The position numbers were made by a program, and so were the translations under genes. A DNA stretch of 57,513 nt, the filler included, from Bipalium vagum (taxonomy: Eukaryota): assembly GCA_037834085.1 (NCBI GenBank). It is 3 parts of 3 records of this genome, joined end to end, with 100 filler letters (N's around TTAATTAATTAA, not from the genome) between each part and the next. Parts side by side here need not be neighbours in the genome. Positions count along the whole stretch, not along the records: positions 1 to 21,338 come from JBBMKC010238661.1; 2 more parts are not named here. The stretch is one strand, 5' to 3'. Of this stretch, positions 11,985 to 16,098 are shown piece by piece (the first letter of the stretch is position 1; each line of letters begins with the position of its first letter). Below the pieces are notes generated by a model that saw only the letters and a list, made by a program, of their open reading frames with translations, ran no database searches and was not told where the DNA came from.

Positions 11985-12892
11985 TTATTGATTCAATTTA
12001 ATTCTCTTTGGAACAGGTTCACTTTTCTTCAACCATCTCGATCTCATAGCACTAGGATCAACTTTTCTTCGAACCTGTCCCAGCCAAATCAGATCGGCAC
12101 AAAGGTTTCTCCCAGTAACACTTATCTGTCGGATATCATTCAGTGCTTCCAACGTGTCCATAACCGACAAATCAGGAGCCAGCTCAACAAAAGCACAACT
12201 GCGACAAAAAAGATTTCGTTAAGGATGATAAATTAATCACATTCAATGTCATCAATAAAAAAATCAAAAGAATGTTTAATCAAAAATCTACATTTGGTCT
12301 TCTTTGAAAAATCGAGTCCAGATCGATTATATGTACAAAATATTAAAATCAATTAATTTAATATTAAACCTAGATTTTTCATTGAAATTTAGAAAGTAAT
12401 AAAACTTATTATTTTCAATCAATAATGGTAATATCAACAAACCTGCCGAACTCCTGTATCATGGTGGAAAATCTAACAATGTTTGGAATCGTTTCCAGTT
12501 TCCTGGTATGTCTGCAATCGGAAATATTATAAACAAAAACGTAATTGCTTCGATGAATCGTGTCAAGCTTTTTTGACAACAATTCAACAGTCTCTTCAGA
12601 CTGCAAATAAACTTCTGACACCTCGATAGTTTTTCCAATGATTTTTGTATCCATGATTCGTTCCAGAGCACTTGACCATTTATCTACTGTTTGATCGGGA
12701 TAGTATATAAATGCAACCCTTTAATAATTTGAAAAAAAACTGAATCTCTCTTCAAGAAAAGATCTGGAAAATTTACCGATGATCGTTACATGGCATGATA
12801 GTCATAGCGTCTTCATCAATGGGAAGAAATGAGAATATCGAAGTCTCGGTAGTATTTGCTAGATTATTGACGAAAATGAAGTCCGATTTCAT
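11985..12892 (-). CDS. spliced gene, ~201 aa, with two divergent RRM-like domains and a basic C-terminus (exons 12892-12777, 12718-12443, 12198-11985)
   Basis: Phase-consistent GT-AG introns give MKSDFIFVNNL...HRVAFIYY...IIGKTIEVSEVYLQ...NYVFVYNI...FGSCAFVEL...VTGRNLCADLIWLG...KKSEPVPKRIKLNQ, with RNP2-like and RNP1-like motifs at RRM spacing. Confidence 0.75.
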
Positions 12893-13713
12893 TAAATTGT
12901 AAGGCAAAGACAGTTGTCTGAATAAAAAATATTTTTATAAATTCCAAACATATTACCGTCATTTTTCATCATTAAAAGATGTGAACTACTGAATAATCAT
13001 GATAAAAATATAGGGCTTACAAAAATGAAAGTTCTTCTTGTGGACATTTTTCAAAAAAATCAATATCTGTTATTAAATATCTAATTTTTATCGAAATCGT
13101 ATTTCTTTCATTTTTAAAACCAGTGATTGATACTTCTTAAAATTGATTATTATCAAAATGTAAATGAAAATGTTTAATACAATTTTATAAACATTTTTAA
13201 GAAAAAACAGAAATGATTTAAAAATCTTAACTTAAAAATTAATAATATTTTACTGAATTATTTTTTGAACTCGTACTAGATATGGATTAGCAGATTAGGT
13301 AATTTTCATTTACTTTTTATGATCTAACCTGTAAAAAAGCAAAAAATATAAATTCTCCTTAAATTAAGCTGGGACTGCATATTAGAAATTGTAACTTACA
13401 AATGTGATATTATTGAAAATCAATTAAATAATTAAAAAATATTATTAATTAAATTAGAGATTGCATATCAGATTTTAATTGCAAAATAACTTGATTTCAT
13501 TAATAATTTATTTTATAATTTATTAATGCACAAGAAATCTTTTTAAAAACGTTTGGATTTCAATTTAAAGCAGTCAGAAACATTCATTTTTATTCATAAT
13601 GTATCTAATTAAGAACTATTTAGTAATATATCAAACAAAAAAATCAATAAATGATTTTATCTTTATAAATGGCATTTTTCAACACAAGTGAATCTTATGG
13701 ATTTAAAAATAGC

Positions 13714-16098
13714 TTACCCAGTGTTCACTGATGAAATTCCTGGAGAGATCTCTTCTCGTTCTTCATCTTCCTCCTCTATCTCATTTTCTATTTCATTTAT
13801 CTTCTCAGTTTCCCTTTCTTCATCTTCTACTATGTTAAATGGAATATGAGTGGGTCTAAAATGGATTTCATCTACTACTAGTACATCTTTTTCGTTTTTA
13901 GTCTTATAATCAATATTATCTGGCAACTTGCGAGGTATATGAACTGTTCGTCTTTCGGAAAGATTTTCCGGTAAATCGTAACATCTCAAATAGACACTGT
14001 CCACCATTACGTTAAGCCCTTCAAATGATAACGACCTTAAGTGATCAATCAATTGTAATATTGCAATGTCAGAGAAGCCCCTCAAGCAAATAAACCCAAC
14101 TTGTGACTTCTCTTCAAAAAATTGAAACAAATATATTTTGAAATTTGTTGGAGATCCTTTCGTTAATTGAGTGTGATCGACCGTGGCCAGAACATTGTGA
14201 ACATAGAGATAATGTGTCAGAACGTATTCAACAGTGCGATCATCATCCTAAATTAAAAATTTCTTTACTATTTATAAAAAATGTCAATATCATTTAAGAA
14301 ATTTTAAACCATACTACTAGTATTGATAAAAATATTAATAATCAATTATTATTACTTTTTTTTTAAATATTACTGGTGGAGCAGCACCATTTGGTTGTAG
14401 ATAAACCTCGTTAAAATTAAGCATCACTGTATGACCACTGTCAGTGATAATCTCCTTTTCTTTCAAGGAATCTTGAAATGATTCAATTTTATTTTCCGAT
14501 AAGGAACTTGGTATAAACAGAAAACCGACTCTCAATGAATCGACGACATCGATAAAAAATGCTTTGGTTCCTTTAACACCCAATGATTTTGAAGCATCCG
14601 CTATTCCTTTTACCGTCAATTTCGTTGACAAATCATAAAGAAACAACAAATTCGATTTATAAGTTATCCTAAATCAATTCAGGATAAATATTTTAAATAT
14701 TTGAGAAAAAATACATTGGAAGAATTTGTACAGATTTCGGAATCATACTCTTTGATAGCCTGACATCTTCTGAAACGAAAACTTCTAGAACTCTGGGAAA
14801 TAAACCATTGCGCAAGCGTCTTGATCTAATATATTTTAATACATAGTCCCGTATAGAGTCGTCTTGGTTTATTGGTAATCTCAAGATCATCCATCTATGG
14901 TTTAGAAAAGAAAATATACTAAAAACCAATTAAAGCATCGAACATTTTAGGATAATTTTTCAGAGTTTTAAGATTCATAAACAATTGTTATTAGTATGAA
15001 TAATTATTTAAATTATTAATTAGTATGAATTCTGATTATAATATCATTATTTTTTGACATAATGCATCATATTAATAGGTATTACTTTCAAAATTAGGAA
15101 ATTTCATTTACTGTACACTAATTTTTAAAAATTTCATTATTTCGAAATAAGAATCTTAATTTTTTTTCAGTTATTATTTATATTTTAATCGAACATCGTA
15201 GATTTTAATTAAAACCGACATATTCATGAATGTCTTTATTTCATATTATTTTCTAAATTGTTGAATTCTTATATGACAAATCGACATTAAAAATGGTCGG
15301 GTTTTGGTTAACCTTCAATTGAATACATATATAATTTTCATATTTTTACTAGACTGATATATCTCGCGCATGTAACTACCAATTATCTGTGTAGATTTAA
15401 AATTAAGACTACAATAAATAAGTAAACAATAATTTATAATATAATACAATAATTTACTAAAATTAACTTAGGAAATTATTTTTTAAAAACTGAAGTATTT
15501 TAGATTAGATCCATTATCAACCAGAATGAATTTTAAAATGAAATTCAACTGGTTGACAATTATTGAAAATAATTCCGTACTTATCTTCTTTCTGAGGTAT
15601 ATCCCAATGTTTAACCTCATTCGTTTGAAAGGGCAGGTCGCCTATGACAGCAAAAGATTCACAATCTTTTGGTAAATTATCCACAAACAAAAATGGTAGC
15701 ATCGTAGAATTATCGGGTATCTGTTTTATGAAAATTGATTAAGTGTGAATTTAGTTAATTAAATTGCAGAAAGTTAATAATTATACAGAACTTGAAAACT
15801 GTTTAAGCATAATATAATATCTTACCAAACTAGTTAAATGTACATTTGGTGGAGGAAACCATACATGGTAAACTTTTAATGGTCTTGATCCATTAATGAC
15901 TTTATTTCTCAATCGTGAAATACCCATTTCAAAATGAGTTATAATAGAGGTCGGATTATATATAAATGCATCAAATAACTCTGCGTATGGGTTTTCAATA
16001 AAAATAATGCGAGACCATTTATTTTCAACCTCTTTAAGTAAATCATAATGTTTTATATGTTTTGGAATATTTGTAACAAGTATTAAATTAGTATTCAT
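13714..16098 (-). CDS. spliced gene, ~480 aa, with four divergent RRM-like domains and an acidic tail (exons 16098-15826, 15720-15581, 14894-14715, 14668-~14356, 14247-13714)
   Basis: All four introns are GT-AG and phase-compatible (0,2,2,0). RNP2-like motifs: LILVTNI, FLFVDNL, LLFLYDL, YLYVHNV. RNP1-like motifs: FDAFIY, KWMILRL, RVGFLFI, QVGFICL. Glu-rich C-terminus. Confidence 0.75.

Follow-up and report, generated by a model that had tools for sequence, protein, structure and literature searches.

Proteins with several RNA recognition motif (RRM) domains in one polypeptide include the classical six-RRM protein RBM19/Mrd1, which belongs to ribosome biogenesis; RBM19 is a conserved gene, and its RRMs are readily detected by Pfam. 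In other arrays, such as those of hnRNP L/PTB, of the quasi-RRM (qRRM) proteins hnRNP F/H and Glorund, and of Prp24, the RNP motifs are degenerate and RNA is bound partly via non-canonical surfaces. The UHMs of RBM39, PUF60 and SPF45 also combine the RRM fold with degenerate RNPs. The locus described here lies on the minus strand at positions 16098-11985 of the window, a 57,513-nucleotide (nt) stretch of the Bipalium vagum genome (assembly GCA_037834085.1) made of three parts joined with filler, and it contains eight long open stretches that encode six homologous units (D1 to D6) of ~85 amino acids (aa) each. We consider it fairly likely that this is an eight-exon gene for a protein of ~688 aa with six tandem RRM-fold domains, and that this protein binds single-stranded RNA multivalently in the nucleus, a role that we infer from the motifs and architecture set out below. 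It is well supported that the family to which it belongs, previously unannotated, is a variation on the multi-RRM protein that has diverged strongly and is restricted to its taxon.

When compared with canonical RRMs (TIA-1 RRM1, Pub1 RRM1-2, the hnRNP L RRM and IMP3 RRM12), the predicted fold was alike, with structural Z scores of 8-10. An RNP2-like beta1 hexamer ([ILV]-[FY]-[ILV]-x-[ND]-[ILV]), a Gly/Ala-Phe RNP1 core on beta3 and a hairpin ahead of beta4 were also shared, whereas the family differs from them in lacking a Pfam RRM_1 match at E<=10, in the degeneracy of RNP1 positions 1-3 and in its long beta4; it shares only ~10-20% identity with any solved RRM. Like RBM19, whose RRMs were among the fold matches, it places six RRM-type domains in one polypeptide. 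Unlike RBM19, it has at least eight Pfam-invisible paralogues, is much shorter (688 aa), has short linkers, and shows no relative among 1.84 billion proteins apart from a fragment described below. The tandem pseudo- and quasi-RRM proteins were among the top matches of D4, but they have no detectable sequence relationship to the family and another domain number, and its beta4 and linkers are specific to it. The UHMs were found among the Foldseek matches of D1; in contrast to them, no Arg-x-Phe loop motif or acidic alpha1 was seen, and the beta-sheet aromatics are largely kept. Finally, the RRM-type ORF1p of non-long-terminal-repeat (non-LTR) retrotransposons is intronless, lies directly upstream of the endonuclease (EN) and reverse transcriptase (RT), often has a coiled coil or a CCHC knuckle and occurs in high copy, whereas the present family has seven conserved introns and ~8 diverged copies.

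The piece of the window that holds the locus is strongly AT-rich, with a GC content of 19-38% per kb. For the exon model, those GT donors and AG acceptors were listed that keep the frame between neighbouring open stretches. An in-phase GT..AG pair was found at all seven junctions, as expected from the initial annotation of this stretch, in which several small open reading frames (ORFs) were said to splice in phase. The eight exons total 2067 nt (688 codons plus the stop), and GC is 35.1% in the exons against 20.2% in the introns, the contrast expected if coding exons are real in such a genome. Also present where that annotation had put them, on the minus strand and in open frames, were all six of its RNP2-like heptads and all six of its end motifs. 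In a six-frame translation of the 21-kb AT-rich piece, the heptad pattern, a looser form of the RNP2 hexamer, arises 37 times by chance, and the heptad alone is therefore poor evidence for the units; they are taken as real because of the GC contrast together with the in-phase junctions, the order-conserved paralogues, the low ratio of nonsynonymous to synonymous divergence (dN/dS) and the profile-profile homology.

Exon 1 (15826..16098) holds the start ATG at 16098 and the complete unit D1, which is the best conserved of the family, and ends at the donor TTG/GTAAGA (the slash marks the splice site). Exon 2 (15581..15720; acceptor ...AACAG/ATA, donor TAA/GTACGG, both in phase) carries the N-terminal half of D2, with beta1 (LFVDNL), alpha1 and beta2. 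The position of the junction between these two exons is kept, with GT..AG, in seven paralogues. In addition, P0003, a MetaClust protein with a UniParc identifier, joins the sequences of exon 1 and exon 2 without a break, which supports this junction independently, whether P0003 stems from a transcript or from a gene model made by others. The C-terminal half of D2 is in exon 3 (14715..14894; acceptor CCATAG/ATG, donor AAT/GTATTT, in phase), with beta3 (WMILRLP), alpha2 and a beta4 with LEVFVS, followed by a conserved LSKxM[IV]PK tail. After an intron of 46 nt, exon 4 (14356..14668; in-phase GT..AG, with the donor at 14356 or alternatively at 14374) encodes the complete D3 and a conserved QPxNxxPP linker. 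Exon 5 (13718..14247) encodes the complete D4, then an H[IV]PR motif and then an acidic linker of ~65 aa, and is followed by intron 5 (12918..13717; 800 nt, ~20% GC). The N-terminal half of D5, with the canonical RNP2 IFVNNL, lies in exon 6 (12777..12917). Exon 7 (12443..12718), which is preceded by an intron of 58 nt and ends at the donor CAG/GTTTGT, comprises the C-terminal half of D5 (beta3 VAFIYY, alpha2 and a beta4 with EVSEVYLQ) and the N-terminal half of D6, with the RNP2 VFVYNI. Exon 8 (11985..12198; acceptor TGTCGCAG/TTG, in phase) supplies the C-terminal half of D6 (beta3 CAFVEL, alpha2 and a beta4 with ADLIWL), a basic tail resembling a nuclear localization signal (NLS), PKRIKL, and the stop TAA at 11987-11985.

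The initial annotation had divided the locus into a four-domain gene and a two-domain gene. Judged from the sequence, it is very probably one six-unit gene of 688 aa, because the stop that would end the four-domain gene falls inside a donor, this donor has a sole in-phase acceptor, D4 and D5 are continuous in the paralogues, and the Met that would start the two-domain gene is an internal one. The stop in question, TAA at 13716-13714 directly after exon 5, overlaps the strong donor GG/GTAAGC, and the only good in-phase acceptor for that donor, TTTTTTATTCAG/ACA at 12917, lies 800 nt downstream. One paralogue (contig C130589) has a single open frame of 212 aa that spans the latter half of D4, the linker and the complete D5, and the gap between D4 and D5 is ~50-90 nt in three other paralogues. 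The ATG at 12892 corresponds to a conserved internal Met/Ile position, with the same L-M-K-S/T context in the paralogues, where the frame is continuous.

Two adjacent genes, one ending at the TAA after exon 5 and the other starting at ATG 12892 ahead of D5, possibly by fission of an ancestral six-domain gene, would account for the in-frame stop and for the length of the gap, 800 nt here compared with 50-90 nt in the paralogues. Intron 5 contains a dispersed repeat of ~250 nt (13133-13385), of which 22 or more further copies exist at 69-83% identity and which is probably a small non-autonomous element inserted there; such an insertion could have broken splicing, and it also partly explains the length of the intron. 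However, the TAA belongs to a strong donor, which pairs with a strong in-phase acceptor, the frame is open for 25 nt upstream of ATG 12892 over a stretch homologous to internal sequence of the paralogues, the Met itself is a conserved internal residue in them, and single loci with six domains are the rule in the family. We therefore regard two separate genes as unlikely.

The genome searched was the assembly of the window itself (440 Mb in 272,664 contigs), with single exons as queries. At least eight paralogous loci were found, and in each of them D1 to D6 follow one another in an unchanged order along a single strand. The eight genomic copies of exon 1 are 51-84% identical and the paralogues of exon 5 34-57%; for exon 7, a 68%-identical copy was detected on contig C166095, plus weaker ones. 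All copies begin with a conserved Met-Asn/Asp-Thr, the Met being invariant among the eight copies of exon 1, and upstream of it there is no conservation. Most copies end shortly past a K-K/R-x-K/R patch. Therefore, the protein consists of the six units, the linkers and the basic tail only.

Selective constraint was estimated by the Nei-Gojobori method between the exons of the window and the nearest paralogous exons on contigs C19059, C215560 and C166095. The dN/dS ratio was 0.035-0.079 for exons 1-4 (0.035 for exon 3 and 0.062 for exon 4) and 0.165 for exon 5. In exons 6-7, the proportion of nonsynonymous differences (pN) was ~0.18-0.20 and that of synonymous differences (pS) was saturated; pN was far below pS in every exon. 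Summed over 585 codons, dN was 0.17 and dS ~1.8, which gives an omega of ~0.09, a rough value because dS is saturated. These comparisons indicate that the duplication is old and that both copies are under purifying selection. The family had been called fast-evolving, which holds for its deep divergence with saturated synonymous sites but not as freely fast evolution, given this ratio. Pseudogene status was ruled out by the same dN/dS of ~0.09 and by the conserved introns.

The relationship among the units was assayed by profile-profile comparison with hhalign, from alignments of unsplit, contiguous exon translations only. The profile of D5, taken from paralogues with an unsplit D5, matched D1 with P 3.8e-8, D3 with P 1.6e-7 and D4 with P 2e-6, and D4 matched D6 with P 3.7e-7. 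As an intron splits D2 in all copies, its two halves were compared separately with the merged family profile; the N-terminal half matched with P 5.1e-6, in register on beta1-alpha1, and the C-terminal half with P 6.5e-4, in register on beta3-alpha2-beta4. Therefore, with in-register profile matches that include both halves of D2, all six units are homologous.

The fold of two units was predicted with AlphaFold2. The D1 model (predicted local distance difference test, pLDDT, 81.9; predicted template modelling score, pTM, 0.72) has the order beta-alpha-beta-beta-alpha-beta, with strands at residues 5-12, 30-34, 41-47 and 75-78 and helices at 17-24 and 53-64. Its top 50 Foldseek matches in the PDB were all RRMs or UHMs (best E 4.7e-4, TM score up to 0.72). 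The same was true of the top 50 in VIA-align, a structural scan independent of Foldseek over 48,161 chains, in which TIA-1 RRM1 ranked best with Z 10.1 (root mean square deviation, rmsd, 3.6 over 87 residues), ahead of Pub1 with 9.2. The D4 model (residues 1-111, core pLDDT 87-94) has the same order of elements, namely beta1 11-20, alpha1 25-29, beta2 38-43, beta3 48-54, alpha2 60-72 and beta4 81-87. RRMs stood on top of its Foldseek matches, led by Pub1 RRM2 at E 1.3e-3. Its best VIA-align match was an RRM of hnRNP L (Z 8.7, rmsd 2.2 over 76 residues), and ~43 of the top 50 were RRMs, with a few ACT and other ferredoxin-like folds. Both models thus agree with the RRM-type fold claimed by the initial annotation, the other four units being joined to them by profile homology. 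Since Z scores of 10.1 and 8.7 are near the level that VIA-align terms "middling", the argument for the predicted fold lies in the near-uniform lists of RRM matches and the in-register motifs, and not in the scores alone.

The shared end motif had been read as a private C-terminal extension that adds an extra beta-strand, and a G-x-x-hydrophobic pattern as beta4. Neither assignment stood. The motif forms beta4 in the D1 and D4 models alike, as the D1 strand 75-78 falls within KVYHVWFP and the D4 strand 81-87 is MVDSVYL, and hhalign placed the x-V-x-E-V-Y/W-L of the family on the canonical I-x-V-x-x-A; from the models and this register, there is no extra strand. The G-x-x-hydrophobic pattern corresponds to the usual loop or hairpin ahead of beta4. 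What sets the family apart is its long beta4, marked by the signature x-V-x-[ED]-[VI]-[YW]-[LF]-x. Directly after it, motifs are kept across the old paralogues, FPPPN in D1, LSKxM[IV]PK in D2, QPxNxxPP in D3 and H[IV]PR in D4, and these may serve in inter-domain packing or docking.

In sequence, the link to canonical RRMs was followed by comparing the merged family profile with a profile of 14 canonical RRMs of the same genome, collected with PF00076. hhalign aligned the two with P 5.7e-5 and a probability of 66% along the span beta1 to beta4, and the register places each RNP motif, RNP2 as well as RNP1, on its canonical counterpart. The RNP2 hexamer [ILV]-[FY]-[ILV]-x-N-L is fitted by D2 (LFVDNL), D4 (LYVHNV), D5 (IFVNNL) and D6 (VFVYNI); in D3 (LFLYDL), D takes the place of N, and D1 (ILVTNI) is without the aromatic in the window, although Y or F is found there in six of the eight genomic copies. 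The aromatic at position 2 of RNP2 is therefore present in five of the six window domains (D2 to D6). RNP1 was scored as the octamer [RK]-G-[FY]-[GA]-[FY]-[ILV]-x-[FY] on beta3; its [GA]-F-[ILV] core, with the Phe at position 5, is present in five of six domains (D1, D3, D4, D5 and D6), and some paralogues have canonical RNP1 forms (K-T-F-A-F-V in D5, K-Y-G-F-M in D3). A language-model lookup of the environmental fragment P0001 in the ESM Atlas returned sub-threshold hits only (0.75-0.80), and the named clusters among them all carried RRM families. The D1 profile against PDB sequences gave syntaxin and tegument noise only. Weak Pfam matches to DUF5847 (E 0.005) and DUF4903 were set aside as chance; DUF5847 finds nothing genome-wide.

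Several observations weigh against the proposed protein and its role. The alignments behind the models were shallow, with nine rows for D1 and 12 rows, some partial, for D4, and D1 and D4 are the folded units, to which D2, D3, D5 and D6 are tied via profile homology only. No match to Pfam RRM_1 or the RRM clan was obtained at E<=10 in the eight window exons and 17 paralogue pieces. When the profiles of D5 and D6 were run against PDB sequences, RRMs came out best but were not significant (E 0.17 and 0.5), the best match of D6 being RBM5 RRM2, aligned from RNP1 to beta4 at E 0.5. Therefore, membership in the RRM superfamily rests on the predicted structure and one moderate profile-profile score. 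In addition, RNP1 is degenerate, its position-3 aromatic being missing in five of the six window domains (D2 has W), and the net charge of the protein is ~-18, which is unusual in a strong RNA binder. That intron 5 is spliced and that the gene is expressed are predictions. The one sequencing run that contains this stretch, a set of DNA-type contigs probably from the source sample, gave AT-rich snippets and no usable junctions.

The distribution of the family was followed in protein and metagenome collections. The D1 profile, run with HMMER against 1.84 billion representative proteins, detected a fragment of 118 aa (P0001) and one artefact, P0002 (1631 aa, E 2e-17), a false positive that consists of a ~50-aa tandem repeat translated from repetitive DNA. 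A word-indexed search of 5.8 billion clustered proteins yielded three related short fragments, all singletons (P0001, P0003 and P0004). The source of P0001 is a JGI metagenome and an ENA assembly, and P0004 is from the same ENA assembly. P0001 and P0003 are 92-94% identical to the paralogue on contig C236283, and P0004 is 88% identical to that on C130589; as the fragments resemble distinct paralogues, the paralogues predate the split from those relatives. No relatives were found in a metagenome locus scan, and a word search of the literature gave nothing relevant. With the D1 profile, no member of RBM19/Mrd1, PABP, nucleolin, PTB or ELAV was recovered from the 1.84 billion representative or the 5.8 billion clustered proteins. 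The earlier proposal of a lineage-restricted family without an orthologue among these proteins was thus upheld, three short fragments being all that was found, and the family appears confined to this lineage and to a few close relatives in environmental sequence.

The genome itself gave 58 matches to zf-C4 nuclear receptors and none to the fungal Zn_clus (Zn2Cys6), so that a fungal origin, conceivable for AT-rich DNA from soil, was rejected in favour of an animal one. Canonical RRM genes of the PABP-like and ELAV-like types are present at other loci of this genome. Separately, apparently intronless frames of ~390-530 aa, each with four tandem canonical RRM_1 domains (PABP-like), were observed on seven contigs (C5991, C126171, C240732, C200552, C81276, C80326 and C242765). 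These are unusually many for an animal genome and might have arisen as retrocopies or by expansion of a PABP family.

In the proposed protein, six tandem RRM-fold domains, the fourth and fifth separated by an acidic linker, would be followed by a basic, NLS-like C-terminus, and binding to single-stranded RNA would be nuclear and multivalent. The long EVYLQ-type beta4 and the proline-rich motifs after it (FPPPN, QPxNxxPP) may fix neighbouring domains relative to each other. The RNA-binding role is drawn from the RNP2 position-2 aromatic and the RNP1 position-5 Phe, each in five of six domains, from the K-K/R-x-K/R endings and from an array architecture typical of RNA binders. The main rival to it keeps the same gene and fold, but takes the RRM-like modules as protein-protein interaction or scaffold domains, that is, pseudo-RRMs comparable to UHMs or to the RRMs of PID-3/TOFU-6. 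The loss of most RNP1 position-3 aromatics and of the usual basic residue at position 1 would fit such a scaffold, as would an invariant Asp at RNP1 position 3 of D1, the negative net charge with a strongly acidic linker, and the presence of UHM domains (RBM39, PUF60, SPF45) and of the PID-3/TOFU-6 RRM complex among the structural matches. However, the two beta-sheet aromatics are kept across old paralogues, inspection of the alpha2-beta4 loops of the six window domains revealed no Arg-x-Phe UHM motif, and the RRMs at the top of the structural matches (TIA-1, Pub1, hnRNP L and IMP3) are ordinary RNA binders. A scaffold of pseudo-RRMs is a possible reading that we hold to be doubtful, and RNA binding remains the role that we favour.

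An origin as a transposon-borne or recently domesticated RRM protein, comparable to the RRM-bearing ORF1 of non-LTR retrotransposons, was also considered, since the gene is present in several copies and remnants of transposable elements flank it (a weak zf-RVT match at 8050-8412, and the ORF 18417-18818 with more than 1000 genomic copies). The copies number just ~8, with 35-84% protein identity, saturated synonymous divergence and a dN/dS of ~0.09, and the seven spliceosomal introns are conserved in position. Neither a coiled coil nor a CCHC knuckle was present, no adjacent RT or EN is common to the loci, and the flanking elements belong to unrelated high-copy families. With conserved introns, low copy number and no shared RT neighbour, a transposon origin is extremely improbable. 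Within the RNA-binding role, one may also speculate on an undescribed RNA-handling system that is specific to a clade of soil invertebrates and has this family at its core. In it, a six-RRM array fixed by the elongated beta4 strands and the proline-rich linkers would read long stretches of particular nuclear RNAs, for example transposon or germline transcripts, and the eight paralogues would differ in specificity; we rate this extension as quite unlikely.

The family does not open a long-standing question. It does show that all of the standard sequence annotations can miss a whole family of constrained, expressed-looking genes made of a domain that is among the commonest in eukaryotes, and that such a family becomes visible only via repeat logic, comparison of paralogues and structure prediction. 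The extreme divergence of its RRMs makes it a useful test case for remote-homology methods. If the RNA-binding role is true, the family would represent taxon-restricted and expanded multivalent RNA binders in an animal lineage for which almost no functional data exist.

Two further elements were noted on the same piece of the window. On the plus strand, GC rises to 34-38% in the block 6449-8412, whose ORFs measure 108-196 aa; one of these has a weak zf-RVT match (E 0.014), suggestive of a decayed non-LTR retrotransposon tail. On the minus strand, the region 17737-19356 contains an ORF of 133 aa (18417-18818) that is a very abundant repeat, with 1180 first-look candidates. The ORF gave 150 scored matches at 44-83% identity genome-wide, many of them with stops, and belongs to no Pfam family; it is probably an uncharacterised transposon protein.

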